A DNA stretch of 64,000 nucleotides from Pavona decussata. Its lineage: Eukaryota. The notes under the pieces were generated by a model that was not told where the DNA came from, made no database searches, and saw only the letters and a list, made by a program, of their open reading frames with translations. The first letter of the stretch is position 1. Every line of letters begins with the position of its first letter. Where the stretch lies: the NCBI GenBank assembly GCA_977016875.1, contig CDRNST010000213.1:806001-870000 (forward strand), given 5' to 3'. Below are positions 847 to 63,484 of this stretch, in pieces. The position numbers and the translations under genes were made by a program.

Positions 847-3800
847 CTAAAATTCACAATGCATTGTAAACAGGGTGGAGTTCAGCTGCCCTTCCATCAC
901 CTCTAAGAAGCTGCTAAAGAACTAAGAGTCCAATTGGTTTGATTTCGAAAGAAAAATAAGCGGACTGGGAGATATTTTTCAAAACATATCAAACTGTAAT
1001 TTATGATCACTGTCCCCACACAAAGTCCAATAAATATTTCGTCCTCTATTGCCTTTATATTTTCGAGGACAGTTAAAAATCCCAAAGGGTCAGTTATTAA
1101 AAGACAGTTTAGACGATGTTTGGCCAACAATCATTTACTTCATCAACAATCATCTGCTTCTGACGGTAACAAGAAAGGCTGCACTCCAGACCAGAAAACT
1201 ATTTATCTGCTTAAAACACTACTTATAAATAGATTTGGAGGCCTGCTGATAGTCTTAAGCTGCGGCCTAAGTTAGACTCTGTTTGAAAAACTGGTCCAAA
1301 ATCTTTAAGGACGGCTCTGCGGCGTCTAAAACTGACATAAGACCTGCCTTACACAAGCTTTCGTCTTCCAATTTGAATTGCGCTAGTATTGCAAGACTAT
1401 TATAAGATATTTGTACCTTTGCAGCCCTTTCCTGTGTAGCCTTTTCTGCAAATGCATTCAAACGTTTCTCCAAGATTGACACAAGACCCTCCATTGTGAC
1501 AGGGATTTGGCAAACAAACACCACCTAAAGGCAACGGGAAGTAATCAAATGTAAATTATAAGAAGGTGAAAAAAAAAAAAAACTAAAGTTCTCAAAATTG
1601 AATCTCACTAATTGACCATGCTAGATGGAACTAGGAGAATTAATACTCTCCCCTAGGATGGGGAACTAGTTTATCGTTCGGTTGTTTTTAAGTATTTTGC
1701 AAGGCTCTATTTCAGTCTATTGGTAAACATTCTGTCTGGGTAGAGTGTCGTGCCTCGACTAACTCTAGCTCTTGCGACAGGCTACTCTTCACCTTGTCGA
1801 TAAAAGCCGTTTGAGCATTGGCTGACCTCGTCTACCGAAATTTCAACTTAATTCCTGATTTCTCCAGGGGTATTTGTTAAACGGAGTTTTCGTTTTTGGA
1901 GTGTTACACATACGCACAAATTACAGAAAATGGCAAATCCCCACATCGCCGAGCAACAGGTTGGGGTACGAATGTGGCTTGGGTTTGTAGCTGGTTCTCC
2001 TCCCTAAACCAAGAGCTTTTTTCTAGGTTCTTCGGTTTTCCCTGCTTCCTCCACAAATAAAGTCTATTTCCAAATTCCATTTAGACGAAGAGCCACTCTG
2101 TGGATGTGTCACTGAAATTCCCTAATTTTTTTGTTTGTTATTTTAAGTGCGGTCTTCTTATTAGAGAGTGACCAGAAACAGTGTCATCCTCAGATCATGA
2201 TCTCTGACGGGAATGCTATGTTCTGTTTAACAGTTATTCCACAAGCACGCGTTGGATATGAAATGATAGACAGGTATAATTAACCCTTTTCCAACAAGCG
2301 CTAGTTGAATACATGTTTTATTAAGAACCTCGCTATTTGTCGGGCATTGAGTAATGGCTGATATCGCATAACCGCTAAGCCAATCAAAGCGCTGGAATTG
2401 TATTATGCAATGATACAGTATTTAAAAATACAGTTATTCCTCAGGATTACGTTAAGTTTTCCCAACGATTTCCTTATATGCCGTAATTGTTACAATTTAC
2501 CCTTATATAGAGAGGTAATATTGAGAAACGCTTCTTTTCAGTCTTAAGTTAAGTTGGTGTTTCACGTGTAAATTTTAATGACAAGTCAACATTTGACAAA
2601 TTTTGTATTAGCTCCTGGCCTATGTGAGACAACATTTGTAAAGTTTACCCTTGAACAATCTCCTTGTTAAAAAGGCTGTCTTTTCAGTTCTTAATTATGT
2701 TCACGGAAAACTTGCTCAATCTTTACACTCTTACAAGCAAAAGTTGTCAAAACAATCATGAGAAAACTTGCTCATGTGCAACGAGTCTTAGTTTCGAGTC
2801 TTTCTGCCAAAGGATACTTTTTAAAGGGGAGTTTTGAATGTTTCTTTACAAGGATATATGTGAATTGCCGACATGACAAGATTATCAAGCTTTAATCCCA
2901 GCAAATGTTCTCTTGTCTTCAAGGTGAGCTATATAATTGGGCACTTGTGAATTAGTAAGGTACTTGGCAAAAAGATAGGGTTAATTAATATACAATGGTA
3001 AGTTAAATTCACTCCTAGCTCCGTAAGCCAGTGATTAAAGCGGAATGGTTAGCGATAATCAGAACAGCAGATTTATTTGCTTGACTAAAAAATAAGCCAT
3101 AACACATAACAAAAGCAAGATCACTTTTGCAGGTGCTGTAGCTGCGTTGTGTAACACCGCAAAATTTTGGGTCCATGACAATTCTGAATTTCCGATCTTC
3201 GATATATGAAACGTCTCAGACTAAAAATTTCCCCTTGAAAGTAGTTTTGATACTAAAGGCTGGTAATAAGTAGTTTAACGGAATTATCACTGTTGAAAAC
3301 TACGATCCTTACTTCAACTGAGAAAAGCTTCATAAATTCAACTTATTATTATATGAACTTGCTAAGAATTGGTTCATTTTATGATATCATTGAACTTCCG
3401 AAATTTTTTTTATTAGATTATTAGTCATTTTCTATTGGATATATGAGCAACTTTTGTCTTCAAAGACTAATGTACTAACACCTAATATTTGCAAGAAAGA
3501 TGCGCTGGTTTAAAGGAGATTTCAAATGTTTAGAAAATAACCCTTTTGGACAAGCGAATGTAGTGGTTTTTTTAAATGTCACTAAACTACGTAAAATTAG
3601 TTTTCTGTAACATGCCTCCTATATAAGCTAAAATAATTTACCCTCATAACAATTTCCGCTATTCGCTAGAACAAACTGTTCTTAATCGGTTATAAGCAAA
3701 CCATTTCCAGACAATGTCGAAGGCGGAACTCTAAAAATAAAGTTAAAAAAAAAAAAAAAAACAACAACAACTTAATCTGCAGAAAATCGCGGATTATTCG

Positions 3801-5572
3801 GTCTCTGTCTCTTGAAATTTAGTTTAATTCTCGAAGTAATCACCATTTTTATTTACTCTTATGGAATTTAATTTCAATAGTTGTGGTTGAGCTAACGCTT
3901 TATTCGATAAAGTAAAACAGAATTCAAACTGACCTTTATAGCCGTCTTTCTACATAATAACTATAATAACTGAGTGAAATACAATAAGAAAGGAAATAAA
4001 TGCGAGATTCGATAATCACAGAGCTTCGTCCTATCAAGAAATGGTCCATTGTACCGGATCAAATTCGTCACCTCACTTGTAAACAGAAGTCTTTTGTTGT
4101 TTTGTGCGCTGAGGGACTTGTGCCGAGAATTGGCGAAGATGAGGTGATGATTATCGTAAAAATTCGAGGTGACAAATTAGCTGCATTAGGGTAGTGTGGC
4201 GCGGAAAGCTGCGTCGTTGTACATAATCGAATTTTACAGCAAAAATAGCAATCGGAGGGATCACAACTAACCAACTAACTCATTTGTATATATTTTGTTT
4301 GAAAAGAATCTAGAGGAACACCGCTCAGTATTTCATTTTCGGCCCGACTGTTGCCCCTCACCTCCGATTTCAGATCTTAGCAAACGTTCTTACCTCTCCG
4401 GTCGAAATCCATATTTTATCTTGTTCAGTTTGATCCAAAGTATTTTGGACGAGTCTATCAATCAAGGATTTCTGTTTTTGAGGCTTAATTCTTGTGACAT
4501 CGAGAACGCATTGCTTAACTGAAAGTTTGAAAACTATCGCCGATGGCGTCAGCTCTTGGCCTTTTTATCCACCTGTACTCTTATTGACAATAAATTAGCA
4601 GATTAATTATCAACTTTACAGGCGATATTAGCGTAAAATTAGTTAACTAAGTATGATATTTTTTCATAAGTACCTCTTGACAAAAGAAAATATTGGCATT
4701 GCCTTTTCAGTGAGGGGGAATCATGTTAAGTTCATTCTAAATGTTCTCTGATAACCAAGAATGACAACAATACGAGTGTCTACGCTCTTTGAAGCAGTGT
4801 CGACTTACCAGGTTAAGAAAATGCACATATTTAAGCGTGGACATTGAAATGCAAGTATAAAACTGAACAAGGACCCACCTAATTCATCAAGGTCGGCCTC
4901 ACTTTCATCTGATAAGTCGTTAATACCTTGATCCCCAGCAGAATTTAATTGTAGCAAGGCTGGCAGATTCAGTCCATTACCAACTAACTCCTGTTGCTCA
5001 ATATTTGGTTTAAGTGGAATAGAATCGTACTTTAACCTGTTAGGTCTCTTAAAAACATGCACATCAGTCGCCATGTTCCCTCCAACATTTCCAGGCAACT
5101 GCAATCGGTTTCTGTATATGTTTAAAGCAGGTAACAGTCTGGCCAGCTGAAGTCCGTATGGTAATCGTAGCGCCGCTGGGTTTTGAATCAACCCATTCGT
5201 CGTGGGAACCAAACCGGTGTATTGCGGAAGTTGTTGCAAAGCAGGAGCTAGCTGATAACCAGTAGCAAGCCTTGTTCCGTAAGGTACTGCTAGGGGGTTT
5301 ATTCCGAGAGCGGCGCGGTTAAGTCCTGCTAAAGCAGCCAGTGAAATACCACGGTTTTTCCGCGTTTTGACAAGGTGTTTGCCAGAAAGTTGTTTAGCGT
5401 TCTTATTGAACTTGTTGTTATCCTGTACAGTCCTGTTTTGGGGGACGATGTTTTTTGTTTTGGTAACGTTTCGTCCTCCTCCATGTTTATGCTTAGCGTT
5501 GTGTGCGATGACTTGTTGAACGACAATTACGAAAACAATCACAACCAAAAGACGCCCCAGCCCTTGACACAT
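847..5572 (-). CDS. Gene A: secreted protein with signal peptide, basic pro-region, Leu/Ala/Gly/Pro-rich block and one EGF-like domain
   Basis: Exon 1 is 5572-4879 ([23 protein letters not shown] signal; donor TTAG|GTGGGT, phase 1). The EGF exon is 1524-1417 (ctttag|...[35 protein letters not shown]|gtacaa; 108 bp, phase 1-1). The 3' end is uncertain: either exon 902-847 ([18 protein letters not shown]) or read-through to the stop at 1400. Confidence 0.75.
1970..2122 (+). mobile_element. Degenerate tRNA-derived SINE body, same family as the copies at 33396 and 35320
   Basis: Shares the pattern 'ggttctc...ttttct.ggtt.t.cggttttccct...ccaaattcca...gaagagccactctgtgga...ctgaaattc' with 35320-35510. 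Confidence 0.55.
2232..2432. repeat. Dispersed repeat; second copy at ~24803-25090
   Basis: Both copies share 'cacaagc.cgc.tt.gatatga.atgataga' and 'gctaagccaatcaaa...aattg.attat.caatgat.cagt.ttt'. Confidence 0.6.
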
Positions 5573-10808: not shown

Positions 10809-12874
10809 TTAGATGTTTGGTGCTCTTTGTCGTCGACTGTTATTTATTACTGTCCTTTTGGTCCCCATTTGATCACCAAAAGTACTTTTTTCAGAAGCTA
10901 TCAAGCTGGATTGGGAGGTTATTGTTTTTATTTTTCTCATTCTGCTTAGGTATTTCCTCTTATCCTGCAAAACTGGTGCTTGGTAACTTCCTCTTTCACG
11001 TTTGAAGAGTGTTGTGTCTTTCCTTTGTAAACAACACTCGTGATGACAGTAGTAAAGACAGTTAAATGGCCTGCATTCCGATGGACAGGGTACGTTAATG
11101 TTAAAAGGCGATGATCCCGCAGCTTGAGTTGAACTTGACAAACGAGCAGAGTGCTCCGAGGTTGCCCTGCAGCAAGGTTCGTCGCAATTAGGATAACATG
11201 ATCGTGAACATCCAGGATGGCAAACGGCAGCCGATGATAACAACGCAAAAGGTTGACGTTTTGGAACAGGTTGATTTTGCTTTCTTGTGGGATTTTCTGT
11301 TGGAAAATGCTTCTTAATGTCCGCTCTGCAGCAGCTAATCGTGCAAGCAGGGAAGCATTCGGAAACACAGCCACCAGGACATAGAGGCGCACTGGATTGT
11401 ACTTGTGAAGTAGCTAGTAGTTTTGATGGTGTTGGCGAATGCGATAACCGAGCGCAACATCCTGCAGGGCATGATGGCACACATTTGCCGTTACAACCTG
11501 CTGGACAATTGGGGTTGGAGGGTGTTGGTTGCTTAGCAAAGAAATTGTCGTATGATTGTTTAGCTTGCCCTTGTGCTGCTATTGGTTCCTTTGGCACTTC
11601 ACCTCTTCGACAACAGTTTTCTAAGCATTGAGGATAGCAGTAAGCTGGGCAACTGGCTGTGCAGGAAGCATGCGGCTTAGAGGGGACTACAGATGACGAA
11701 AGATGAGGTGGAGTTATCGGTGATGATTTTACAGTTTTAATTGGTTCTGTCGGACGTTTCGCTGCCACAGGTGGAATTTTACTCTTCGAACAACAATGCA
11801 TTGGGCAACTGTTAGAACAGAACCAAGAACAGGATGGTTGGCAATGTAATGGTGTACCGACTTTACTCAAAGTTGGTTTACTTGGTTTTTCACGACAGCA
11901 TCTTTGGGGACAAAGATGTGAGCATGTCCCATTGCAAAATTCAGGGCAAGTAATATTTGAATCCTTTGGACTTTCCGCAACACCTACTTGCTTGAAGATT
12001 ATATGCGTTTCCACGCCGAGATTTTTTGGCTTTGTGGGCTGAGCTCCCTTAACTTTATGATCGTCCATTTTTAAAGGAAACTTCTTATGCTTGGAGTCAT
12101 AGATATTACCATACATACTGTACATCATGTTTAAAAAGTTCATCATCCCGAACCAACTCATTGCGTTTCTAAAAAAGTCAGCGTTGTTTTTGCTTTCGCT
12201 TTTCAGGTGTTGAAAATCGGTTTCCTTGAAGGTTGTAGAAGTCGAATTTCGCTCACAACAAATGGGTGGACACTTGGAGTCACATTTGATTTTGCACGCC
12301 CTTGGACAAAACTTTTCTGCCATCGTTTTCATAAAACTCTCCTGAACTTTGGGGTCCAACATGGGAAATTGATTCTTCACTCCAGAAAGATAGCAACATG
12401 CTTTTGGACAGGATGGCTGACAGTTTGCCATACAGCTTACGGGACACTTTCCCAGACAACACCTAATGGAACAGGTATCTCGACACTCAGTTTTACAGTT
12501 GTCAGGACATCCTTCTTCCTCTGAGAGGGGTTTTGCTTCCGTTTCTGAAACTGCAAACCCACCTGACGGATTTTTCAAGTTTATAGCTTCTAGATTAGTT
12601 TCATCTGATTCGCTGGGTCGCTGTTGAAAGTCTGGTGCAAAGTTAGTTATAGCTTCACCCACTTTGACTATAGGTTTAAGGACAACTTCTGAAGGATGTG
12701 GACCGTGTTTGTTTTTTGGAGGAGGGGCATTGGGTGGTACGGTTATCTGTTGGGTATCTCCATCATTGTAATGAATCTTGAGCACTGGATGATGCTTGCA
12801 GCAGTTTGGTGGGCATCTGGCGTGACATGTCGTGGTGCATTGGATGGGGCAGTTCCTGTGTGTTATCTTATACG
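10809..12874 (-). CDS. Gene B terminal exon encoding 11 CxxxCxxxCxxxCxxxCC (minicollagen/NOWA-type) Cys-rich domains
   Basis: Acceptor tttaaacag at 12875. Examples: CPIQCTTTCHARCPPNCC, CPDNCKTECRDTCSIRCC, CPVSCMANCQPSCPKACC, CPAGCNGKCVPSCPAGCC. The last copy, CPSECRPFNCLYYCHHECC, has one extra residue. Confidence 0.9.
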
Positions 12875-15800
12875 CTGTTTAAAGAGAACGAAAATACCTA
12901 AAGTAAAATGTGTGAAGCTTGAAGACATACACAACAACGATGACATCTGCAGTATCAAATAGAGAATAACATGGGAGCTAAAACGGGATTCGACCTCGTT
13001 GCATTTATAATGCATATGCTACATCAACGTAGGTAATGACGCCGTCCCAAGAAAGAGATTATACCCACTGTCGGAAAAAAATAATGTGCACGGAAAATAT
13101 GGAACACAAGGGGAATTACAGTGTAACGAACTTAACCGGGACAACCGAAAAAACCGACACTTTGAAGTTTAAAGAAATGTTCTTGTTTTTGATTGGTTTA
13201 CAAACTACCAAAGCCGGACTCCTTTGTCGTAAACGTGACCTGTGATTGGCTGATCAATGTTGGGTGGCCCCGGTTGAGTTCGTTGCACTGTAATGACAAA
13301 TTTCAGCACAGTCAATTAAAACTAAAGGAAATTGGGGTGTTTGTTGTCCAAGGACAAGGAGTGATGCCTCTTCTAAGTGACTAGAGTAGGTGCTGAGAGC
13401 ACTTTTGTTTTGTTGCGTAAAACTGATAAGAAAAACAAATCGTTTTTTTACATTGTGAAGACTTCGATGTCATGTTATTCGGAGACATAGATAACATCAT
13501 TCCACCCGAATGTTTGTTCCCATTTAACTTTTAATGGACTGCAAGTCTTAGATTTTTTTGGGGATATATTTTAGATACTTGTGGGAAAGCCCTGCGTGCA
13601 TTATTCACAAATAATTGGTCAAATCATTTGGTAAATCATGGTCCGAAATCTTTGGAAATCAGCAGAAAAAATTATAAAAAAGTTGCGGTAGGAGAAAAGA
13701 GTACGGAGGAAGTATCATGCCTAGAAAACGAGCACGACCTCTACAAATAGGACTTTTAAGCACTTTTATGTATAAATTGAAGTTCCAATCGTTTGACCAG
13801 CGCGACCTTTGTATTGACCTAACATCGTTAGTTCACCAGGTTACCAAAAATATTGATCGGGCTTACGTGCGCATTCATATCCGTTGAAGTAATGATGATG
13901 GTCACATAGACAGAATCCTTTGATGCATTTTCCGTGCTGCTTGCACCCTGGCAGACAGGTATCAGCTGTTTAAAAATATAATAAAGGTACTCAGTGTAAC
14001 GGTGACCGGCTGACTGCTATCGAAATGAATGATCTCTATGAAAACTAAGCCCGTGGAAAGGTATAAGGTATATGAAGACGCATTGTAAAACAGCTAATAT
14101 GTTAACACAAAACTACCACATCATCCATCACCCATCACTTTTGGGCATCATTTTTTGGCATCGGTAGAAAAGCGTGGTTACTGTAAGAAAAAAAAGAAAA
14201 ACAATACTTACGGCGGCAGTCGAGTCCATCCCCTGTGTAACCGGGCTTACAAACACATTCTTTGTTGATGCATTTGGCATTGTAATGACATTCTTTACAT
14301 TCAATCCCTTGGGAATCTTCATCTGAAATAGAAACGAGATTACAGTTTGGAGAGAAATCAGGCATTTCGCTTTTAGATACGAGAGACCTTAAATTTTTTC
14401 TCAACCCTTTCACTGTCAGATTTTAATGAAAAATCTCATTTTGAAGCTTAAGCCACAAACGATATTTTGCGACTGTCACTTTGAAGTATCGTAGCCAAAC
14501 TTCCAAAACACTTTGTTCACATTCGAGGCAAGTATCTTAACGTCTTTATTTATGGTATACACAGAAAGTAAAATGTCTGTGCTTGGTGGTTCGAATGGGA
14601 TTCCAGTATACTTCCTTTGTGGGTTTCTTTTGCTTAACTGCTTCAAAAGTGGTCTGCTCTTCCTCTCTTACTGATTTTAACATGTTTTCGTAGATCTTTT
14701 CCCAGTACGTTAGTTTGAAACATCTGATCACGTTGGAAAGGATGATGATGATACAACCATGAGCATTCCCATAGAGTGCGCCTTAAATTGCTCATGAGCA
14801 ATTTGGCAAGAGTGCAACAAGGTACTTGGGATTGTATCACCTTCAAACTTTTTGCTGTAATGAGCAACACAGAATGCCTAGCTCTTAATACAAAAGCATT
14901 ATACTTGTAAGTTTAAAAAATCAGTTGTCTACAATACATAATTCAGATTTATTTAAATGGGGCCAGTCCAAACAAAGCACAGGCCTATATATATACTCAT
15001 AGAGCGCTACAAATAGGGAAGAATTGTAGAATATCCTTGAACAGGAGATACTCTCGCAATAAAACAAGTACAAGTTTAAACTGAACATCAGCACAATAGC
15101 TTTGCATGAATAGTTAAATTTTAATACAGTTACGATAAAACCCTTTCTTTGTAAAATCTTGATTTTGGTTAAGTTCATTTCTCAAACATTATTAAACATA
15201 CCATGCTCAAAAATGTCCATCGGCTAGATTTAGTTTGTATCCTTTTATTTTCACTTTAGTTAGCAAGCGTTATTGTGGTTAGAAATCTGAAACAAAAAAG
15301 GGGTAGTCTCGCTTGTATTGCAAAAAATGGTAAATTGAGCTTAAAAACCTTTTTTTAGAAAAAAACATCTTACTCTCTGCACAAAATGAAAATAAAGAAT
15401 TTCGTTTCAGTTAGCTCTAACTGAACATAACGTTTCGACTTTCGATTTCGACTGTTAACAGAGAAATAATCTTTGAGATTGAGCAGACTTCTTTTGAGAC
15501 TCATAACGTTAACTTAGATAAGTCACAATTTATGTTCAGGCGAAAATTGAAAAAATGATCATTACGCGTAAGATGTCACGATATGCATATTTAAGAATTT
15601 ACAGAATCAATGAAAACAGGTTTTGAATCCACACCGTTTTTCTTGAGAGAAATGTTGCCTGCCATTTAAAGTGGCTCGCTCAGGCTACCCAGTTCTGAAA
15701 GACACCTTCCAAGTACCTGACAACAATTTGATCGCAATAAATAACTTAACATGCCATTAGTTTCTGTAAAAGAGGTTCCTGTTCTCTTCTTAAAAATGAG

Positions 15801-18524
15801 ATTCAATTAGGTATTTACTTGAATAATATTGTTTTTGTCGTACAATGTAAACTGCCGCTTTCCCAGTACCTAGGGGTTAGTTGTTTTTATTTATTGGGTC
15901 AGTTTACCTTGCTCTGTTGTCTTTTTTTTCAAGAAGCGAGCACTTAACACAAAGAATTCGTTTTTGTGGTTTCTGGACCAGTGAAAAGGATTAGTCAAAC
16001 ACAGAACTCTTACTGAAGGAAGAAGATAAATTAGCATAATTAATTTCGAAGAAAGGACTCAGATCATGCATACCTGGCTCGGGACCAGAGAGAGCGGACA
16101 GTATATGGGCCAGCGGTTGATCATCGTTGATTATGCAGACTTTGTCTACGCATCTCGCATTGGGAGGGCATCCTTTACATCCCTTGACTGTGCATGCACA
16201 AAAGAAAACTCAATCACGGCTTCCACTATCCCTCGAAGGCAGATTAATGGTTAATGGTTAAGCTTTTTTATGAAATATTTATATTTTGAAATCTATAATT
16301 TAGCGCGAAATTTATCTCAAGTTATCCGTCGGGCATGTCTCACTTTCCAATACTGAAACAACCCACTAAGCTGATGGCCTGTTAAAATTCATTTATGAGT
16401 TTGTTAGATGATCACCAATAATTCTAAAGGGCGGCTATAATTCAGGCTTCTGATGTTAAATTGAACTGTCAATATTGTTTCGGTCTGGACAAATATGAAT
16501 TAGAACATTGTGTTTTAAATTATTCCTTGCTCGTACAGTCTTTTTTACAGATTTATATTATCTCTTCATTCAATTACCTCCATTATATATGCTCTTCATA
16601 ATCTAACGTGCCCTATTATTCGATTGTATTTAACTGTTGAACTGAGTGTTTTTTAACTTGAAATTTGTAGTTCTGCATTAGCTAGCTCACCTGCTGGTGG
16701 ACCATTCTTGTTTCCAATATTAATGATTTTGTAAGCGTCGTCCTCCATAGGTGGAACGTTCGGTTCGGAACTTTGGTGCTGAAATTGTTGTTGAACAAAG
16801 TTAAGTTCATTTTGACTCTCCGCAGACGTAGCACTTTGCAACTCTTGGTTTCCTTCAAATCCATTTGCCGCGTCATTTACTACCTGGTCATTCGAGGGAG
16901 CATATCCATTGACTTCATTTCCAGTTCCGGTCTGGATAGGATTACCGTTGTCATCTACAACAGAGGTATGATATCCAGTTGGGGAACTTATACTTCCCGC
17001 ACCCATAAAACCATTAGTGCCGCCTTTGGAATCTGGCTCGGGACCAGTGTTAATCGCATTTCCTCCTTCGGTGGCAGAGATAATTCTTTGACCATCTCCT
17101 CTGTCGCCATTGGTTTCCTGTGGTGAAAGAGGTGGTTCTTTGAGCGCTTCCTCGATTGATGAAGCATATTGAACACCAGGCTCAGGACTCTTATCGCCAA
17201 CTTCGTTGGACTGCTCATTCGTGTAACTAAGAGTTCCCTGACCTTGTTGTTCTGGGGCTGTTTGCTGACCCTCTGTACCAAACAAGCCGCCATATGAATT
17301 GGACGAAGTGGTCAGACTTTGTGAATCGTAAGATGTTCCGTCTGATGCTTGTGGTTCGTCTCCTGGCTGCTGTTGTTGTTGTTGTTGGTCTTCTTGCTGC
17401 TGCTGGTATTCCTGTGTTTGGTCTTGCTGCTGCTGAACAATGCCCTGTGATTGCTGCTGGTCAAGTTCTTGTTGCTGTTCTTGTTGAAAACCAGCTTGTT
17501 CAAAACTAGTTTGAGTTGGACCTTGTTCTTGGTCCCCTTGCCGTTGAACGCTCTCTTCCTGTCCTTGACCTGTCTGTTCACTCTGATATTGCAGCTGTCC
17601 ACCTTCAATCATTGGACTTTGCTGCCCTGCTAGTTCGCCTTCTTGGCTGTTTGGTGATGTACTGTCTTGGTCTTGTCCTGGTTCCTGTGGGTGCTGTGTG
17701 TACGCCGCTTGCTGTAACTGAATAGCTTGTTCAAGACTAGAGGGTTGCCCACCCTCACTTTGACCGGTATCTTCGTTATTACTGGTAGCGAAATTTGCCA
17801 CTGACGACTGGCTGTTTACTTGTTGATACGCTGTACCATCTTGAGGCGCTTCGAATTGCATCAAAGAATTACCATCACTTAATGGCTGCTGTTGTTGATC
17901 ATCATTTGACAATTCTTGGTTTGTTCGGTCAGTCTGTGGCGAATAATCTGTATTTGATTCATCTCCTCCAGTCATAATGGACTGGTAGTCGTCAGACTGT
18001 GATTGGAGGGAAGGCAATGATTGGAACAAAGCATATTTCTTGAAAACTTTTTTCTTTTTCTTTGCTGCATTGTCCTTGACTTGTAACTCATTATATCTTT
18101 TTCCTTGGGTCTTGGCATTTGTGAGATTTGATTTTTGAAAAGAAGTTGATTTAGTACCGATGGCTTTACCCCTTGGTCCCTCTTGAGAGAAATGTTTCTT
18201 TGAAATACCACCAACTAAGTCGAGATTGACATGTACCTTTTCCTCCTTCCCAGCGTGTCGATCTCCATACTCAGAGTTAATTGACGATGTTGCTTGTTTC
18301 TTCACCGTAGAACCACTATCTTTTGTCTTGTCGGTTACAATCCTTTCCGGTTTTAAATCCCTTTCTATTACGTTCTCTCTCCTGACAGTACTTAGTCGAG
18401 AGGATTTCCTTGGCTGCTTAACATGACTATTTGCTTGTTTTGTTTCGGCCCTACCAGTTGAATCAACAATGAACTGTAAAACACATAACATGAAAAGCGG
18501 ACCAAAATATCTAAAAACTTTCAT
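10809..18524 (-). CDS. Gene B: secreted ~1407-aa protein with signal peptide, basic pro-region, Gln/Glu/Ser-rich block, half-EGF, 2 EGF-like domains and 11 minicollagen-type Cys-rich domains (candidate cnidocyst structural protein)
   Basis: Exons 18524-16691, 16187-16074, 14322-14212, 13965-13867 and 12874-10809. All introns are GT-AG and phase 1; the total is 4224 nt and in frame. Signal MKVFRYFGPLFMLCVLQFIVDSTG. EGF-like ECKECHYNAKCINKECVCKPGYTGDGLDC and TCLPGCKQHGKCIKGFCLCDHHHYFNGYEC. Confidence 0.85.
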
Positions 18525-38974: not shown

Positions 38975-39004
38975 CGGTCTACCCGTACCGCCAACAATTT
39001 AGGG

Positions 39005-51361: not shown

Positions 51362-54300
51362 CTTCACAGCTGAGGCCGGTCCACCCTGGGGTGCACTCAC
51401 ACTTGTATGCCCCTTGTGTTTCAGTACATGTCCCTCCATTCTGGCAAGGGTTTAGTGGAAGGCACTTTGATTCCTCTAGGGAATAAACAATGCACATAAT
51501 TTTAGGAAGGTTATTCAATAGCCCACGAATTTCCGGGATGATTTTCGTTCTGCTACCAGGCTTGTAATACCCATTAACGATCTTTTTTTGCTAATCTATA
51601 CCGTACACAAAACGTGTCATCGTCATGTAGGCTGAAAATTTGCTGAAACGTGGCAATGGCAATGGCCCCGGGCTTTTGTTTGTCTCGGCACTTAAGACGT
51701 TTTTGGCTACGCACGTGGCAGAAAACTTTTGGAACGATAAACTACAATTTGCTTTCTTCCGAAGTACCATGTACTTATATAACTCCAAAGTTTTGACCAT
51801 TCCTTGTACATATCATTATTAAACGCAAAAGTTGTCTTATAACAGTGTTGGTTGTGTATTGGAGAACGCTCGATCTTGCTTCATTCGTGGATAGATTAAA
51901 CAAAAGTTAGGAAGCCAGATGGAAATATAGCAAGAAATTTTTTTGCCTACTTTGGCAGATCCATCAGCCAGGAGCGTGGTGTGGTTCGTAATAAATAAGA
52001 ATCGTCGGAAATTATTGGTTTAGGACCGATGTTAGTTGATCTAAAAGACGAATTGAAGTCTTCTGTTCATTGGGAAATTTATTCCCGGGTACCGAGATGA
52101 AAAATGTCCAAAAGGTCCCCACAATACCCGTGGAACCACGCTCCGACTTGTCAGCGACCTTACAAGCCATGCGCAGTTGAAAATGTTTCGCCACGGACAG
52201 TCCCGGTATCCAGGCTGGAGTGTTCATATGGGAAAAATTTCCAGCTCGGTTACCGAGATCTCGTTAAAGGGGCCAGCCCTCCTTCTCATTTGAACACATC
52301 GAAATTTTTGTAGAGAAAAGATTGGCGAGGCGAGATCTCGGAAACCGAGCCAGTCCGGTCGATCGAGCTCATATGAAGAGGCCCTAAATCTGCTTCTCTA
52401 TAATCTCAACCTCTGTAAACGAAATGACGCTATTTTGCACTCTGTCCCAAGAATAAATTAGGAAATGGGAAAACTTGTAATTAATAACCATTCTTACAAT
52501 TTATTTGTGAGATTTTCAAAGGCGTTGTTTTCATCTCTTGTTTTAACGAGTCAAAAGGGCTACAAAAGATATTAAAAAATACTTTTAAAGACATTTTACT
52601 GCAGTAAATACTAAGGCTTATTGAAGCTCTAAAAGCTCACGGATTCTTTTACAATTTTAGATTCTGCTGCCACTTAATTCCAATAAAAAAATATCATTCG
52701 GGACAAACCAAAAATTAAACCACCAAGTACAGCATGTTAATTGCAAGTCTCGCAAATTTATTTATTTTATCTTTTTTATCACACTTTTCAAGTGTCGCAT
52801 CTCTTTTGATTGTCATTACATTCGTTGTTTTTGCCAGTTAAGTAAAACTTGTTTTTAACCGACTCTGTAACGCGTAATATTCAACAGACGATGGCAGATG
52901 AAACTCCCAAAATAGGTGTTAAAGTTAAAAAAATGTCTTGAAAAATTAAAACAAAAATCGTACTTTTCATCAAAGGTAACCAAAAGGTGCTTCAAAAAGA
53001 AAAAAAAAATAGAAAAGCCCTAACCAAAGCAGTTTCCAGGGATAGTTTTATTAGCTAAGGCACTATCTGGTGCAGTAAGTATCACCCTTCTTTGAGGTAT
53101 TACGTAGTACCTTGGCAGTTCTTTCCCATCCATCCTAATCGACAAATACAGGAATAAGAAGTCCCGTCAGATGAACAGGTGGCGCCGTTTTCACAAGGAG
53201 ACGGAAAACACGGATCTGGTTCTGAAAGACAATTAACTTTACCTAATGCCGAACTCTACTCTCTTGGACGAAGCTGTTATTTAACTTAACCATACTTAGC
53301 TGCTTATTTACACAGGTTTCCTCATGTTACGTTATTAAGGCTCCATTTGTTTGATCTAAGAAAAGGGACTCACTGAAACCATCGGGATCAATCAACCCGA
53401 TTATGTCTTGGAGGTTAGCCGGGGCTAGGTGCGAAAAAGAAAGTAGATGTTTTACACAAAACTAGTTATGAAATAAAAACATCGAAATCGTAAAGGTATT
53501 ATCACGTTCAAAACTCGTAACGCGTCACCATTTGAAACAAAGAAGTGTGTATGCAACCGTCAATATCTTAAATATTAAGTATAATTAAGTTCATTCGCAA
53601 TTACATGCCGCTTGTTGGTTAATAACGGTTAATGTAAATTGTTTCGTTGTGTACTTACTGTCGCAGTTCTTTCCGATAAATCCTTTACTGCAGGTACATT
53701 CGTAGTCGTGTTCCACTTGCGAGCAAACACCAAAGTTGCGACAAGGATTTGGTTTACACAAGTTTTGTTCTACCAAAAAAAATATATAAAACATTAGTTA
53801 AGTAGTCTCTACTTTAAGCCTGGTTTTCACTAGGACATAAGCATAAGCATGAACAGAAGCTCAAACTCTTCTTAAACAAGTGAGAACACTTGCGGCATAA
53901 GCACAAGAAGAACGAACGTGTTCGTTCTTCCTGTGCTTATGCTTATGCTTATGCTTATGTTATGTTATGTTTTCGCCAGTGAGAACAGGGACGACATAAG
54001 GACAAGCACAAGCACAAGGCAGTCAACCGTTTCGTCTGCCATCTTGCTTAACATTGAGGGGAGCTGGCATCGAGAATTCCGTCAAGAAATGGTTTTCTGT
54101 GCGTGCGTCTGTCCTTATGCTTATGTAGCTAGTGTTCTCACTTGCTTATCTTCATTCTTATGATTATGCTTATGCTTATGTCCTAATGAAAACCAGCCTT
54201 AAAACGTCAAAAAATACAAAGCACGCTTAGTATCGAAGGTGGAGGTAAGCAGAGGCTGCAGCTAGGTTTGAAAACTTCTTGGTAGAAACTCATCGAAGGA

Positions 54301-57278
54301 GACAATTAGGAGAGAAAGAAACACGGATCGTGATAATAATGATGACTAGTTGATAAGCAGTAATTTAGTTTAAAACCAAATTTAAATAAAATTCCAAGTG
54401 AAACTTTGAACTTTTGTTTTCTCTATTAGCATATAATGCGGTTCTATTCTATCAGTATTGTAAATGCTATTGTCTTTGTAAATGTATTGCAAATTGTAAC
54501 GTAAATGTAGTATTTTTCTTTTTTTTCCAAGATAAATGTTTATAATTATATTGTATAAAAACAATAAAGGTACCTCTAACAGTCCAACGCAAATGACGAC
54601 GAAGTCATAGAAAATGTGACGAGTAATCACAAGATGCAACACAAAGCAATCCCTTTGTATACTGGGACTTTTGATGCTATCCGTTTTTACGAGCCATTAA
54701 AATACTCCCAAAAGTGACAGGTTTTTTCTTTTTACCTTCACAGTGTTTTCCTTGAAATCCATCGGGGCAGTGGCATCGATAGGTGTTCATATAGGCAGAG
54801 CACGTCCCTCCATTAAGACAAAGGTTCACAATGCACTGACCGTTCATTATGGACTCTAAACAGAACGTTCACGAACAAAAATAATGATGTCGGGTATTAA
54901 GAGGCAGATGATGCACCGCTTGTAGTAGGTGCATTAAGAGAGAAGGAGCTAACAAAGAATGCAAGGAATCATGTATAATTAAACTTATAGCTTGGTATTC
55001 ATTCTGGATCCTGGCTGTCGTGTACAGATGAAGTGTTGATAGCTTGGAAGCGTTGTTGATAAAACTGCCGCCAAATCTTCTTTGCATGTTTACTTAAGAA
55101 GTGTCCATGAATTCTTTTTTGGAAGCTTCCCCAATTATTTCTTATTATTTTTTTACTCTAATTTATCGCTGATGGCTAATTTGTCTTAGCTTATTTCCAT
55201 TTCATGAGAATAAGCCAATAAGAACTTTCATCAATGCAGTACCAAATGCTCACTATCTCCGATGTAAGACGAGCAGATTGTAGTTCCTTTTTGTATAGCA
55301 ACTGATCTACTCTTTTGCACTTGCCTCCTTGGCAACGACATACACTTAGGAACGCTGTACCCCAATACACATGTCTATAGTATGGAAGTCCGAGTTTGGT
55401 CTATTCGATTCGCTGTTTTATCACTCATATTATGAAACTGTAATTACCTCCTCCATTGTCCACGTCCTCATGAATGTGATGATGATGGATCTCAATGGGT
55501 ACTGGGAAAGGAACTTTCTGAGGATACATGACCGGGTAAGGTACCCGGTGAATCATCAGTTGTGGTGGTGATGGCACAGGAACCGGATAGGGTTTCGGAG
55601 GAGAAGCAACAGGAAACGGAACTCTTCTTATTTCGGGTGGATACCGGATGTAAACTGGATACGGGACATGGTGTACTTGTGATGGTTGGGAAACCGCAAT
55701 AGGATAAAATATTCTTTGGATTTCTGGGGGTTCCTTGACGGGAACAGCGATAGGATAAGCAACACGTTGTATTTGTGGAGGCGAAGGGACTTCTACTGGA
55801 TACGGTACTGGTACATTTTTGATCTTTGGAGGGGATGGTACAGCGACAGGAATTTCTTGGATTTTTGGTGGAGAGGGCACGCCTACCGGCACCACTACCG
55901 GCTGTACGGAAGGTGGACCAGGTACAGGAACAGGATAAGGTACATGCTCTACTTTAGGTGGTGAGGGAACTGGTACAGGAAACGGAACCTTTTCAACGGC
56001 TGGTGGAGACGCCATAGGGGAAATGTCTATGGGTGGAGGCACCCCCTGAATATCAATAGGGTGTGGTGCCACAGGAACGTCCGTAGGTGGCATCATGGAA
56101 AAGTCCGGAGAATTGATTTCGGGGGTAACAGGTGCATCTATTAGAGGATGATTGTGGATTGGACCATCAGGATGAGGCATCATGTGAACATCGGGATACG
56201 GGAAGTTTCCCCCAGACGGAGGGTTTATAGGAGGAATCTGTCCACCCAACATATCTGGGGGAATCGAAGGCGGAACATTTATAGGGGGGAGTGGTTGAGG
56301 TATAATATTAGGTTGCGCTGGAGGTTCTAGTCTGGGAGGTGCATGAATATGAATGGCGTACGGAGGAGGTGGACCAAAGTGATGAAGATGAGAATGGTGA
56401 TGAGGAAGATTCAGAGGAACAGGAATGTGGTGTGGTGGCGGGCGACCAACCAAATTAATCGGAAATGGAAGCAACTGTCCAGAGTGTTTTATTGTGTGCA
56501 GGTGATTCTTACCACCATGGAAAAAGGGCCCTGGTCCTATCCCGTGCAAATGTCCAATGGCATGAAAAGGGCCTTGTCTTAAATGCACTGCGGCCTCATT
56601 AGGCCTGTGCACTGATGGAGTTTTCTGCTCAACGTATTCCGCTGGTGCACTATTGAAAAAGAAACGTGGCTTCATTTCACTCTTGACATCTGACCATTCA
56701 TGCCTTTTGTCCCATGCTTGGCTTTCTGTAGGTTTATCTGTAAGATTAGTTGTTCTATTTGAGCTGCGTTCACTTGTATCTGTCCCATTGCTAAATTGCT
56801 TATATGGCTTGTTAGGCGTAGCGCGAGTAGCAAAGTTCGATAACTCGCGAGGCTTTGAGTGATCCAGCGAGTCAAGCGCTTTAGCCAAGAAGACTGATTC
56901 TGTCCTGCGATTTCGAGTAAGCTTATCCCGCAATGTAATTTTACTTGTGGCAACATTTTTACTGCTCCATAAGCACGACGTTCCTTTACAAGGTATCCCC
57001 TTGCCACCATTAATTGTCTGCAGGTGGCTTTTGTTGTGCTCAGTTTCCCAACTATTCACATCACTGTCTCTTTGACCGCTTTCTTTCTTCCTCCCACGAG
57101 TAAAAGGTCTCACAGTTCTTTTTCCAGAATCGACGACGTTTTCTGTTCTGTCATTAAAACTCACCTGATTTTGTAACTTTTCTACATGGTGTTTACGAAG
57201 ACCTGCACTGGTGTTTGTTTCAACCCATTCCAATGTAATGAAAATGCGGAGGAAGCAAAGTTGGATTAAGAACTTCAT
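51362..57278 (-). CDS. Gene D: secreted protein with signal peptide, basic pro-region, His-rich block, Pro/Val/Tyr (VP[Y/F]PV) repeats and at least 4 EGF domains; terminal exon unresolved
   Basis: Exons 57278-55448 ([18 protein letters not shown]...; donor GGAG|gtaatt), 54855-54736 ([12 protein letters not shown]...), 53769-53659 ([12 protein letters not shown]...), 53221-53111 ([12 protein letters not shown]...) and 51475-51362 ([13 protein letters not shown]...). All are GT-AG phase 1. Confidence 0.85.
52052..52386. mobile_element. Non-autonomous DNA element remnant
   Basis: Repeated 'ttcat.tgggaaa..t..cc.g..c.g.taccgagat' units, ending catatgaagaggccc-taa. Confidence 0.5.
53815..54200. 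mobile_element. MITE with TIRs and (gcataa)/(ttatgc) subterminal repeats
   Basis: aagcctggttttcactaggacataagcataagcat...atgcttatgcttatgtcctaatgaaaaccagcctt, flanked by TTA and TAA. Confidence 0.8.
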
Positions 57279-58635: not shown

Positions 58636-60391
58636 ATGCGGGAGGTTTTGGGATGTGTTTCTCTGGTGGAATGTCTGGCAGTGTGTTGCTTCTTCACCTT
58701 TATTGAGACTACAAATGTTGTTAGTGGATTAGGCCTTCAAAAAATAGATAACATGTCAGAAAAGACAAATAGCATTACAGGAAAACACGCTTTGATGCTT
58801 GAACAAAAATTTAATGTATTTCAAAAGAGGCAAAGTGGAAAGCGCTTACGAAAAAGGCGCCGACTACCAGGTACTTTATTTCATGGTAGGGAAGACATAG
58901 TTAGTAATCATTCAAAGAAAGTGAATGTGAAAGAAAACGGAATTACTTCAGGCGAACAGGAACCTGTTTTAAGTAAGAGGGACTACTTCTTTGCGCCAGC
59001 TTCGCCTTACGGACAAATGATGAATTCTGTTGACCGAAGGATGTTTCTGGTTCATCGTGGAGAAAGAGGTACATGTAGCTAGTTTAGCGACCTTTTTGTT
59101 GCACTTAATCTCGATTGGTATCTGAGTAATCATGTCTTTTGCTCGATTGTATGCCATTTATTGTTGACAGTTCCAAGACACAAACCTGTAAAGCTTGTTT
59201 TCATTATAATTAGTTCATTAAGCGGGATATGGGCTTAACGCGTCTCAAGTGAAGGGCTAGCGGATATATTTGCACTGTGAAATAATTTTGTCAGCTCCTT
59301 TTGATCAGGAGCCGTATAATACAGTAGACCCCTTATTTTCTGAGATACTCGACAGAAGCGAACCAACTGGTTTACAAAGCAGAAACTTACGATAGCGGGA
59401 AGTAAATCACTTTTGCAACTCTCCGTTCTTGATAAAGTATTTGGTCATCAAGTGGGAGGAAGTCTACCATGCTTAATAAGACTCGGCAACGATAACCATT
59501 TCGACACTTGTTTTTATGTCATCGAAACTAACTTAGCAACAATTAGTCAAAAACTAGCTGACGTAATTCTCATTTCATATCGACTGATCAGACAATTTGT
59601 GTTTTATGAATTAAACTGAACAAATAAGCGACTGACAAACTAGACTAGAAATGCGGAGAATATGAGAGGGCAATTTGAAGAATGACGTCTTTAGCCTTGA
59701 AGCAATGATATTTTCCTGTAAACTTCTCCACTTCAAGTTAACTTTAGCTTAACCAGAAGAACAAGCAAGCATAAAATAACTTTTCAACTTAACCTCATAT
59801 TTGTACAGGACCGTGTTTCTTCCACTCGTGTCATCATGGTGGAATGTGTGTTCCAAGACGCCATGGGTTCTATTGCGAATGTCTTCCGGGTTTTATGGGG
59901 ACAAAATGTGAAGGTTTGTGATACTAAAAAAAGTTTTATCATTAGCCATTGTTAGAGTAAAAAAAAATGTTCCGTATTTAACCTATTCGTATTCATCACA
60001 GTATCGTAGAAGATGCGAAATTTCTAGGCGATACAAAACCAGCAACTGTTTAGCGCTAGCCTCAAGGAAAGCCAGAAAAGTCCATTTCTCAGCCAAATCG
60101 TTATTGGTAATTATACTTTGTAATGCTTGCTTCGAATTTTAATACCAAAATCTTAGCTGTAATTGTTTATAACAGTGTAAAAACCACATCGGTAAATAAC
60201 TGTAGAGTTATGGTAAGGAAGAATTTTGTGTTAAGTTTGGAGCATTATAAAACAATTTGACTATACGAGTCTGCTCTCTGAGAGAAATACGAGACTTTTT
60301 GTAGTCTAGTTACGTTTTATTTAGAAAAGCTTTCATCAATTTTCAGAATTAAGTCTAATTAAATCCTCCATTTTCACAACAAAGCAGCAGT

Positions 60392-60422: not shown

Positions 60423-63400
60423 ATAGCAGTAGCAGTAGTAGTAGTGNNNNNNNNNNNNNNNNNNNNNNNNNNNNNNNNNNNNNNNNNNNNNNNNNNNNNN
60501 NNNNNNNNNNNNNNNNNNNNNNNNNNNNNNNNNNNNNNNNNNNNNNNNNNNNNNNNNNNNNNNNNNNNNNNNNNNNNNNNNNNNNNNNNNNNNNNNNNNN
60601 NNNNNNNNNNNNNNNNNNNNNNNNNNNNNNNNNNNNNNNNNNNNNNNNNNNNNNNNNNNNNNNNNNNNNNNNNNNAAGGGTTGTGATGATGGCAGTGGTG
60701 GTAGTAGCAAGAGACTCGGCTACTGATATAATGTAAAATACTGACTAGTCCGTCAGCCCTGCGATGAGAGTAAAGCAGGTACAGAGAAGGGATCAAGTTT
60801 ATGCTTGCAATGACTCCCTGCTAGTTAATGGATTACACAACATAACATCTAACAGGTTTTTCTTTGCGTTGTTCAATCATGCAGTTAAAAAAGAGTGCAA
60901 ACCTACAACGTGCAAAAATGGGGGAACGTGCACAGAAATAGCAATAGGAAGGCATCTGTGCACATGTCCAGTGGGTTTCCTTGGCGAGAATTGTGAAGGT
61001 GAGTGTTAACCGTAAATGGCGGGGAAAATTCTGTGCTATTCTCTTTGTTGTAATAACAGAAGCTGTATCCGTACATAACAACCTGCCCCATTAAATTCAG
61101 AGTCATTGCACATCCGTCTGTTCCTTACCGAGCCAGTTCATGGAATTAAAGTCGGCCTGATTCAGAAAATCGTTGTAGTGCACTTCGATACTGTCGGGCA
61201 GACAAATCGTAGCGTGTAAACCTGCCTTTGTAAAACCACGCGGAGGTATTCAAAGCAGTTTTTCTCACTTGTACAGATGTTACGGTAACTTTTTTAATGA
61301 ACGTTCTGTGATTCTAAGCAGTTTGTAACTCCCCTGGATGCATTGTGGTCAGGCAAAAACTCTTACTTCAAGGAGGTTTTTGTAATTGTTTAAAGTGTTT
61401 ACATGCTACGAATTGTCGGTTTAAACATTATCGCAAGGCGAATCACATATGTATTTAGAAACCCGATTTACGACCGATTCGTTAAATGAAAATCAGTCCT
61501 ATTCAGAAAATCTGTTGCGGTACAACATATTTTCCTCCACATCTGGCTGACACACTCAAAGAAACCGCCGCCTCAATCGGGACTCTAAATACACCTACGA
61601 TTTGCCCACCTACATTGTCGGGCCGACAAATGGGACCGACCAATCGAAGCGTTTAAACCGGCTTTAGGAATTCAGAACTATTGATATATAAGTTTTCATA
61701 TATGTCACGGCCTACAAGCCATCCTCCACCATTTTTGTCTTTGTTCCTTATTTAACTTGAAGTCATTTGTTAAAGTATTATTAAGGGCGGAAGCTTTTTC
61801 ATGAATAAACATATACAATAAATAATCTAACGACTCCTTTTGTCTGCATTCCTTGATAAAATCAAACATTATGGAACTATAATGTTATTTATGTCGCGAC
61901 ATGATGCCCACGTGATAATCCGTTGCTGTCATCGGTGCTAGGTATGTCTAACCAATGAGGTGTTAGGGCGGTTCCGACTAGGTTTATAGTCGAGATTCCT
62001 TGTCAAAAGCGGCCTTGCCATCAGAGTGTTCATATCAAGAGAGAAGGCAAATGTCGCGATATAAAATAGATTATACTTCTCCATGAAAAGCTGCTTCAAA
62101 GGTTAGCAATACGTGTTGACTGCCCCATTGCCTAAAAATGCTTCAAAATTGTTTTTGTTCCAGAGCAAAGCTATTGTCATCCGAATCCGTGCCTTAATGG
62201 AGGTACATGTAGTCAGTTGGATGAGTCATTCACCTGTGTGTGCCAGGAGGGCTACAAAGGAAAGAACTGTGAAGGTTGGTGAGCGGATATTTAAAGGTGC
62301 AGTGTCACCGATTTTTAATGTCACTATGAATAGCCCCCAAATGTATTTGTTTCAATGGAAATGATGTTTGAGTTTTGTTAACAATGACCCTACTAGTGCG
62401 TAGAAACTAATATTGATTATGTTTGGCTGCGGATGGCTAGGATAAAAGTGGATTGCAACTTGAAAAAATTGGCCAACTTTTTCAAGTTATTCCTGTGTAT
62501 TTTGGAGAAGTCACTAAAAACTGATCACAGTTTGTTCTTTCTAGGAGAAAAACCTTATTATTTTCCTCCTGATGTTGTAAGAACAATTTTAGGTTACAAC
62601 CAGGCTATTTATAAACCATTTAAACAGCTTTGGCCAAACTAAAGCAGAATCGCCGTGACAGTGTCTCTTTAAGATATCACTGTCTATGAGCATCCCTTAA
62701 ACCCTGCTTTGTTCCTTACAATTAGGCTCCGTCCATACTAGTGCGTTTTCGATTGAGACGCATGCTTTTTGATACACAAATCCTATCATCCATACTAAAA
62801 CGATCAAAAACGCTGTTAAAACAAAAGACTTGAAATTTTAGAAACGCATCTTTTTGTTAACGCTTCGTTTTTAATGTGGACAAGTTAAAACGAAAAATAC
62901 TGAAAACGATGACGTGGATAGCATCACACGACAACCAGTCCAAGCGTGAGCAAATTTTCATGCAACGACTGACAGGTACGTGCAGTCGTTTACATCGTTG
63001 TTGAGCGTCTTAGTGTGGACAGGTGAAAACGATACAAAACGCTTGCATGGACGGAAAGATTTCAGCGAGATGAAAAAACCTCATATCATGGTAGCGACAA
63101 TTCGTTGAAGCACTTTGCAGAATAATTCCTGCTTAATTAAACGAAAATGTTTACATGATATGAGAAATCAACTCTCTCATGAAAATAAGTAATTAATATA
63201 AATAAATAATTCAATAGTAGGATGCTCCCTAGCCTATGAAGATGGATAAAACATTAATTACTTTAATAGGTTTAGTGTATATTTTTTACATTTTTACTCA
63301 TAATAACGAAATCAATCAATGGACAAGATAAATAGCCTTGATGTGCTGCATTATAAACTCATTTTATCTACAGCCATTAACAAGTGCTCACCAAATCCCT

Positions 63401-63484
63401 GCAAAAATGCGGGCGCCTGTTTCGAATTGAACAACGATTACATTTGTAATTGTCCACAAGGCTTCAAAGGAAAAACCTGCGAAG
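58636..63484 (+). CDS. Gene E (3'-incomplete): secreted protein with signal peptide, basic pro-region and at least 4 EGF domains
   Basis: Exons 58636-59068 (MREVLGCVSLVECLAVCCFFTFI...; AGAG|gtacat), 59809-59913 (PCFFHSCHHGGMC...), 60885-60998 (CKPTTCKNGGTC...), 62164-62274 ([12 protein letters not shown]...) and 63374-63484 (CSPNPCKNAGAC...). All are GT-AG phase 1. The gene probably continues beyond the window. Confidence 0.85.
60383..60710. repeat. (CAG/TAG)n trinucleotide tract interrupted by an assembly gap (N 60447-60675)
   Basis: Direct reading. The gap lies in intron 2 of gene E. Confidence 0.9.
62291..62672. mobile_element. TTAA-flanked MITE
   Basis: ttaaAGGTGCAGTGTCAC...GTGACAGTGTCTCTttaa. 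Confidence 0.7.
62724..63054. mobile_element. MITE remnant
   Basis: aggctccgtccatactag.gcgtttt...aaaacgcttgcatggacgga inverted ends, with internal tgtggac repeats. Confidence 0.6.

Follow-up and report, generated by a model that had tools for sequence, protein, structure and literature searches.

The window analysed here is a 64-kb stretch of the coral Pavona decussata (GCA_977016875.1, contig CDRNST010000213.1, positions 806,001 to 870,000, forward strand); coordinates below are window positions unless another sequence is named. Six-frame scans place five secreted-protein genes in it, called A to E: gene A (first exon 4879/4903-5572, minus strand), which runs off the window start; gene B (10812-18524, minus), which is complete and backed by RNA; gene C (22804-37618, minus); gene D (about 51.2-57.3 kb, minus); and gene E (from 58636, plus), which runs off the window end. 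In the same scans, EGF-type cysteine patterns lie nearly all on the minus strand between 1.4 and 55 kb and on the plus strand from 59.8 kb. Two results stand out: gene B ends in an array of 11 cysteine-rich domains (CRDs) of the type known from nematocyst capsule proteins, and its position between C and A is, judged by exon matches, kept between stony corals and sea anemones.

Gene layout and shared design

Each of the five first exons encodes a methionine and hydrophobic stretch, then a K/R-rich, net-basic stretch (containing KTRKNR in A, KKR in C, RNRR in D and RKRRR in E) and then a low-complexity block specific to the gene. Near the end of the open frame there is a candidate phase-1 GT donor, a single one in B, C and D and several in A and E. 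An earlier, sequence-only reading of the window had proposed five genes that begin with a long exon of this kind, and all five are present, their donors being candidates except in B, where the donor is RNA-backed. The low-complexity blocks also agree in composition with what had been described: L 23%, A 17%, P 10% and G 9% in A; Q 30%, S 11% and E 9% in B; P 18%, V 10%, R 8% and H 7% in C; P 24-29%, H 12% and V 18% in D, with seven [VI]P[YF]P[VI] motifs; and almost none in E.

A splice-aware scan found ~26 downstream exons of 96-156 bp that are flanked by AG and GT, are in phase 1-1 and are nearly all EGF-type. The size range originally given for such exons began at 78 bp, and no 78-bp exon was found in the scan. 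The downstream exons tested against Pfam matched EGF, hEGF or EGF_3 (best EGF E-values 1.5e-11 and 1.4e-10; one EGF_3 match at 1.9e-6 reaches the cut-off), and they have the six-cysteine pattern of EGF-like domains (PF00008 / PF12947 EGF_3) with one phase 1-1 exon per module. Pfam recognised zero families in any A-E first exon or in the last exon of gene B. All database and genome searches in this study were run exon by exon, with single exons rather than joined exon models as queries, and the genome searched was the 602-Mb coral assembly.

Structure and transcription of gene B

Exon 1 of gene B (16691-18524, minus strand, as are all its exons) encodes a signal peptide, a K-rich basic segment and an acidic Q/E/S/G-rich block of ~400 amino acids, and ends in a phase-1 donor; the layout is that of its counterparts in Nematostella (P0007) and Stylophora (P0077). 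Exon 2 (16074-16187, 114 bp) is a half-EGF cassette (CKGCPPNARCVDKVCIINDD...) with 74-78% identity in Nematostella and in the contigs L016 and L017. It is followed by two phase 1-1 exons recognised by Pfam and bounded by RNA junctions, an EGF_3-type module in exon 3 (14212-14322, 111 bp, EGF_3 1.1e-5) and a tenascin/teneurin-like EGF module in exon 4 (13867-13965, 99 bp). The last exon (10812-12874, stop 10809-10811) has an RNA-backed acceptor at 12874 and holds the 11 CRDs, set apart by P/S/T-rich linkers, together with the conserved motif FRNAMSWFGMMNFLNMMY and a basic tail. By the arithmetic sum of exon lengths the gene has 4221 nt, or 1407 codons.

RNA contigs from three separate studies (runs X1, X2 and X5) contain the junctions 12874|13867, 13965|14212 and 14322|16074, all GT..AG on the minus strand; the last of these was found in X2 and X5. 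RNA also backs the donor at 16691. The runs covering the window include 'coral metagenome' metatranscriptomes. A 2164-nt contig from X1 spans the CRD exon into exon 1 and joins 14322|16691, so that the 114-bp exon 2 is skipped in frame, which is direct evidence that the cassettes are used as swappable modules. Mapping of RNA had been suggested as a check on the exons of all five genes: it confirmed the junctions of B, while the models of A, C, D and E are without RNA support and rest on splice consensus and orthologues.

Two other features of the RNA runs fall on the gene. A short repeat at ~13098-13296, in the last intron of B, has a depth of hundreds to 15,000 in all four runs, with many loose ends and strand-switch joints; it has no family in Rfam and is probably a transcribed interspersed repeat. 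A 3284-nt metatranscriptome contig from run X8 covers 15376-18550, that is, unspliced exon 1 and the adjoining intron, with ~5% differences and several indels, and is probably genomic DNA or pre-mRNA of a related coral in the sample.

The CRD array compared with known capsule proteins

Of the 11 units encoded by the last exon of B, 10 follow the CX3CX3CX3CX3CC spacing strictly and one departs from it by a single extra residue, and together they account for all 66 cysteines in the exon; the 11 minicollagen CRDs read from the sequence at the outset are thus all there. This pattern, and polymerisation by disulfide reshuffling, are established for nematocyst walls (PMC4863159). A profile built from the 11 units and searched against all PDB chains (177,635 sequences) matched only NOWA (2hm4/2hm3/2hm6, E 8.7e-6 to about 1e-4) and minicollagen (1sp7/1sop, about 1.5e-3 to 2e-3), with no other PDB protein below E 8. 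Judged by pattern and profile, the C-terminal domains of B are true minicollagen/NOWA-type CRDs. When the profile was searched against this genome only the 11 copies in B passed E 0.01, the whole CRD exon matched only itself there, and the ESM Atlas gave no usable match for it.

The closest known system is NOWA of Hydra, of which Nematostella has four genes. Like B, NOWA carries numerous minicollagen-type CRDs in a C-terminal array (8 in the Hydra protein, 11 in B); it gives the best profile match (E 8.7e-6), and a role as multivalent disulfide cross-linker of the capsule wall is presumed to be common to both. The N-terminal half of NOWA, however, consists of SCP/CAP and C-type lectin domains, whereas B has the basic segment, the acidic Q/E/S-rich block and three EGF-type modules instead, and the motif FRNAMSWFGMMNFLNMMY is specific to the B family. 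Pfam detects neither SCP/CAP nor C-type lectin domains in B, its exon 1 and CRD exon being without families and exons 3-4 EGF-type only, and B was ruled out as a NOWA on this ground.

Minicollagens have the same CX3CX3CX3CX3CC domain as B (PMC4863159; PDB 1sp7, 1sop), together with proline-rich linkers, but they carry one CRD at each end rather than 11, and B is ~10 times longer. A regular-expression search found no run of at least four G-x-y triplets in the first or last exon of B, compared with the 12-16 Gly-X-Y triplets of minicollagens, so B is not a minicollagen. Cnidoin, an elastomeric capsule protein of Hydra, resembles B in combining CRDs with a long disordered Gln/Gly-rich domain and differs in having single terminal CRDs and no EGF modules, the likeness being one of description and not of alignment. 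Gene B has an unnamed architecture among CRD-array capsule proteins and is uncharacterised in every database searched.

Relatives of gene B

An exhaustive HMMER pass with the CRD exon over 1.84 billion representative proteins returned 12 matching clusters. The named relatives are Nematostella XP_032230174.2 ('uncharacterized LOC116613828', 1348 amino acids), Stylophora PFX12157.1 ('Protocadherin Fat 4, partial') and XP_022810609.1 (uncharacterised), and Actinia tenebrosa LOC116304487 (uncharacterised). All of them are Hexacorallia, which describes the clusters matched and does not prove absence elsewhere. The Nematostella orthologue has the complete layout, with a signal peptide, a His/Lys/Arg-rich segment, an acidic Q/G/S-rich block, three small cysteine modules in the same order and the CRD array; the Actinia and Stylophora RefSeq models start within the Q-rich block and agree with this layout over the remainder. 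In an alignment of ten family members the CRD positions are conserved, as are the motif FRNAMSWFGMMNFLNMMYNMYG and a terminal atypical CRD, VPCPxECRPFNCLxYCHHDCCLR.

Automated annotation had been expected to scatter the genes of this locus under unrelated names, and such names were found ('Protocadherin Fat 4, partial', 'Protocadherin Fat 3', 'uncharacterized'). The main text of open papers makes no mention of LOC116613828, XP_032230174, PFX12157, XP_022810609, LOC110240410, KXJ13352, LOC116304487 or NV2.6437-6441, and XP_022810609 is not in the Stylophora cell atlas supplements searched.

Conserved gene order across Hexacorallia

In Nematostella (L002), an EGF-repeat gene lies on either side of the B orthologue, both on its strand. 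The last exons of the upstream gene (1276 amino acids) match C EGF exons 12-15 in order at 55-75% identity, and its final exon matches the WSC-like exon of C (65%, E 5e-46); the first exon of the downstream gene (2230 amino acids) matches the first exon of A (35% over 213 amino acids, E 5e-22). In Stylophora (L015), upstream of B exons 3 and 4 and the CRD exon, C EGF exons 7-13 follow one another in order, with 9 kb of N between the two sets. An anthozoan metagenome contig (L017) carries B and then an A-like first exon (43% over 164 amino acids) with EGF exons. B has C as its immediate upstream neighbour in this coral, Stylophora and Nematostella, and A as its immediate downstream neighbour in this coral, Nematostella and L017. 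The microsynteny that had been put forward as a check is accordingly found at both junctions: by exon matches, C-B and B-A adjacency is kept between stony corals and sea anemones.

One published gene model has been affected by this arrangement. PFX12157.1, on Stylophora LSMT01001549.1 (L015), is a chimera that joins C-type EGF exons to B exon 3 and the CRD exon over the 9-kb N run, and this 'Protocadherin Fat 4' model came about because the C EGF exons precede the B exons across that run.

Genes A, C, D and E

Exon 1 of gene A (4879-5572, minus) encodes a signal peptide, the basic segment with KTRKNR and the L/A/G/P-rich block; its donor is at 4879 or 4903, both phase 1. The first EGF exon lies at 1417-1524 (minus, 108 bp, phase 1-1, Pfam EGF 1.5e-11). 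Beyond the window start the gene continues with ~30 further EGF exons and then two same-strand exons (L007:6151-6603 and L007:4562-4996, both minus) that make up a split Laminin_G_3 (concanavalin-like) domain, a match that reaches the concanavalin-like superfamily level only. Next after these, on the same strand, is a P/Q-rich open reading frame of 787 amino acids (L007:1899-4259). Skeletal 'EGF and laminin G' proteins are neurexin-like (PMC4890752). Compared by description, they have only domain names in common with gene A (EGF, then Laminin_G_3), and gene A was rejected as such a protein by its architecture of at least ~30 EGF exons and split Laminin_G_3 exons.

Gene C begins with an exon (36454-37618, minus) that encodes a signal peptide, a long K/R-rich segment and an H/P-rich block, and that ends in a phase-1 donor. 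Its 16 phase 1-1 EGF cassettes, all on the minus strand, lie at 35966-36076, 34707-34817, 34269-34379, 31671-31784, 31392-31520, about 30287-30400, 29641-29781, 29345-29455, 28875-29003, 28208-28318, 27821-27949, 27111-27227, 26479-26634, 25743-25868, 25261-25359 and 24426-24533; they are of hEGF and EGF_3 types, with one half-EGF akin to B exon 2. The terminal WSC-like exon (22804-23121, minus, candidate acceptor) has only 4 cysteines and matches Pfam WSC (PF01822) at E 1.8e-5 and 25.3 bits, under the 27.8-bit cut-off. Its profile reaches the Kremen WSC in PDB at E about 1.1, and Foldseek gave no match with a poor AlphaFold2 model (pLDDT, the predicted local distance difference test, 66). Upstream of C by 1.3 kb, 38872-38979 (minus) is an 81%-identical copy of residues 83-118 of its first exon and looks like a partial duplication or pseudo-exon of it. 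The intron between C EGF exons 3 and 4 contains a tRNA-like element (33003-33075, minus; Rfam tRNA, 47.5 bits) to which ARAGORN assigns no anticodon, and which may be a tRNA-derived short interspersed element.

Exon 1 of gene D (55448-57278, minus) encodes a signal peptide, a basic segment with RNRR followed by the conserved SVFLAKALD, an H/P-rich block and P/V-rich VPYPV repeats. Four hEGF exons follow (54736-54855, 53659-53769, 53111-53221 and 51362-51475, all minus), and the 3' end has alternatives, either a donor at 51362/51347 or read-through to a stop at 51201. Exon 1 has many coral homologues and one in Exaiptasia, LOC110240410; four of the coral homologues (P0042, P0051, P0052 and P0064) are unspliced open-reading-frame calls and are uninformative on splicing. 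The Exaiptasia orthologue is complete (P0069, 812 amino acids): it shares the H/P-rich and VPYPV blocks and carries the four EGFs in the order seen here; its EGF_3 module and tail were not found in this coral.

Genes D and E are head-to-head across a common intergenic region of 1.36 kb. The first exon of E (58636-59068, plus) encodes a signal peptide and RLRKRRR and has several candidate donors, and EGF exons follow in the window at 59809-59913, 60885-60998, 62164-62274 and 63374-63484 (all plus). An assembly gap at 60447-60675, inside a (GCA/GTA)n microsatellite, falls in the intron between the first and second of these, 533 bases past the donor of 59809-59913 and 209 bases ahead of the acceptor of 60885-60998. 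The reading frame of E is independent of the gap because both flanking exons are phase 1-1; a cassette exon may be hidden in it. Between C and D there is an intronless open reading frame of 400 amino acids (45118-46317, minus) for a rhodopsin-family seven-transmembrane receptor (7tm_1, E 1.3e-17), unrelated to the EGF family.

Paralogy and the wider neighbourhood

The genes had been read as paralogues of one another, and this stands for one part of them. The first exons of A, C, D and E returned only self-matches from the whole genome, save the 81% partial copy upstream of C, and pairwise BLASTP among the five first exons gave no E-value below 0.47. Among the EGF exons, the best non-self genome-wide match of the second EGF exon of D is the second EGF exon of C (58%), and D EGF exons 1, 2 and 4 are each best matched by C EGF exons 1, 2 and 4, which makes them colinear. 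The neighbourhood supplies 6 of the 10 top matches of the second D exon as against 18 of 149 overall, and 4 of the 5 top matches of the B EGF_3 exon as against 5 of 149 overall, so that the EGF exons are, as had been predicted, closer to each other than to EGF exons genome-wide. B and C have in common an unusual half-EGF cassette that ends in (I/L)N(D/N)D. In terms of sequence similarity, paralogy holds for the EGF modules only and not for the first exons.

The neighbourhood was examined for 60 kb on either side of the window, and the EGF-array genes span at least 140 kb in this coral. The cluster as first delimited (847-63484) does contain the five genes; A and E extend beyond the window, as does the neighbourhood itself. 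A second CRD exon, outside the window, lies at 107486-108823 (plus, window numbering; L013:3486-4823), 44 kb past the window end. It has 66 cysteines, 11 CRDs and a very basic tail and is 27% identical to that of B; EGF_3 and 'YF.G' EGF exons come before it in the order seen in B. A long EGF-array gene of the plus-strand arm may end in this exon.

Interpretation

The cnidocyst, the organelle that defines Cnidaria, is held together covalently by CRD-bearing proteins, of which few architectures are known (minicollagens, NOWA, cnidoin and some others). Gene B is an unnamed one that extends from reef corals to sea anemones and that Pfam and genome annotation have missed. We judge it slightly more likely than not that the window forms the central part of an old neighbourhood of secreted matrix-protein genes in Hexacorallia, and that B and its flanking genes encode a capsule matrix made by cnidocytes. 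Such a neighbourhood would have been assembled by shuffling of phase 1-1 EGF cassettes. By analogy with minicollagens and NOWA, B would be secreted into the post-Golgi cnidocyst vesicle, where its 11 CRDs could exchange disulfides with those of minicollagen and NOWA during capsule maturation. As a multivalent cross-linker, B could thereby anchor an acidic, hydrated and possibly elastic domain in the polymer of the capsule or tubule, and A, C, D and E would most likely be further components of the same cnidocyte-made matrix. We infer cnidocyte expression, cross-linking and any common function of the neighbours.

Co-expression in cnidocytes is plausible because neighbouring poly-EGF genes are nematocyte markers in Nematostella (PMC12549020). 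The 'cnidocyst-specific matrisome' of that species includes fibropellin-like and poly-EGF proteins, which, like those of this cluster, are secreted, consist almost entirely of EGF repeats and are encoded by neighbouring genes; their identity with the A and C orthologues is only a candidate one. NV2.6437, 6438, 6439 and 6441 are neighbouring genes and nematocyte markers, and NV2.6440 is absent from the domain-based list (PMC12549020). NV2.6440 is a candidate B orthologue, purely as a guess, made because a CRD gene to which Pfam is blind would be missing from such a list. The same paper describes no CRD-array gene among the poly-EGF genes and no coral synteny. An epigenomic cnidocyte preprint has nothing on EGF genes or clusters, and the 'EGF' matches in a bioRxiv minicollagen paper were discarded, being eGFP and not EGF domains.

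A bolder version can be entertained tentatively, as something short of probable: an ancient syntenic 'cnidocyst matrix locus' of Hexacorallia whose poly-EGF and CRD-array genes are co-regulated in capsule-building cnidocytes, with B as a new class of capsule protein in which an acidic, possibly elastomeric domain is coupled via 11 CRDs to the minicollagen network. Since the named matches are all Hexacorallia, the locus might belong to a capsule type specific to hexacorals, such as the spirocyst.

A rather less likely account, and still a serious one, is that only B and the B-like exon outside the window belong to cnidocyst proteins, the flanking EGF genes being ordinary extracellular-matrix or cell-surface genes of other cell types that came to be adjacent through ancient tandem duplication and exon shuffling. 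The findings that weigh against a common capsule function, several of which speak for this account, are the following. The first exons of A-E are mutually unrelated, and a common sorting propeptide is unsupported because they have no detectable similarity; EGF arrays are common in ordinary extracellular matrix, and this genome abounds in them, with at least 1753 candidate matches; CRDs are confined to B and the exon outside the window; and the unrelated receptor gene at 45118-46317 interrupts the cluster. Further, the equation of NV2.6439/6440/6441 with the Nematostella orthologues is a guess, a second pattern, NV2.5960/[5961]/5962, fits too, and this one is not among the entries listed in the cnidocyte-specific and marker tables of PMC12549020; nor was a D orthologue found in Nematostella with a coral or Exaiptasia query. 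Gene order kept from coral to sea anemones argues the other way, as do the unusual half-EGF cassette common to B and C, the position of the nearest relatives of the B EGF_3 exon inside the neighbourhood, and the many poly-EGF genes, some of them neighbours, that are nematocyte-specific in Nematostella (PMC12549020).

That the proteins are adhesive, mucus or other gland-cell secretions, with the CRDs of B as general disulfide cross-linkers outside cnidocysts, is improbable. Mussel foot protein-2, the comparison drawn at the outset, is a secreted structural protein with tandem EGF modules; it belongs to an unrelated lineage, relies on DOPA (3,4-dihydroxyphenylalanine) chemistry and is without CRDs, and the likeness is in design only. 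Secretion, low-complexity P/H/Q-rich blocks and EGF arrays would suit such a role, and bioadhesive or fibrous roles have been suggested for poly-EGF proteins, though within cnidocysts (PMC12549020). CRDs of the pattern in B, however, are known only from cnidocyst proteins and match only NOWA and minicollagen in PDB, and a DOPA-type Tyr/Lys-rich composition is not seen. Very improbable, finally, is the skeletal organic matrix, one of the structures initially suggested. Acidic Q/E-rich blocks are typical of biomineral proteins, but A, B, C and D have orthologues in non-calcifying Nematostella, Actinia or Exaiptasia, which makes a skeletal role unlikely, and the architecture of gene A is unlike that of the skeletal proteins to which it was compared.

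Under the capsule-matrix reading, the fixed place of B between two EGF-array genes across deep divergences offers a testable case of a conserved structural-gene neighbourhood for a cell-type-specific organelle, and phase 1-1 cassette shuffling and in-frame exon skipping illustrate how such proteins arise. Chimeric or misnamed models ('Protocadherin Fat 3/4') could mislead coral skeleton-proteome and cell-atlas work.

Other features of the neighbourhood

The plus-strand arm beyond the window also holds many further EGF exons. Just past the window end, two tandem-duplicate first exons (L010:653-1813 and L010:5046-6308, plus) encode a signal peptide, a K/R-rich segment and a low-complexity block, and near-identical EGF exons follow each of them; these are additional genes of the same design. 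Most of the remaining top EGF-exon matches come from a second dense EGF-exon locus at 1.07-1.21 Mb of contig C248, which may be a paralogous cluster. Between E and the next EGF genes, open reading frames at 71211-73232 (plus, window numbering; L004:7211-9232) resemble, by eye, a Ty3/gypsy-type reverse transcriptase and RNase H.

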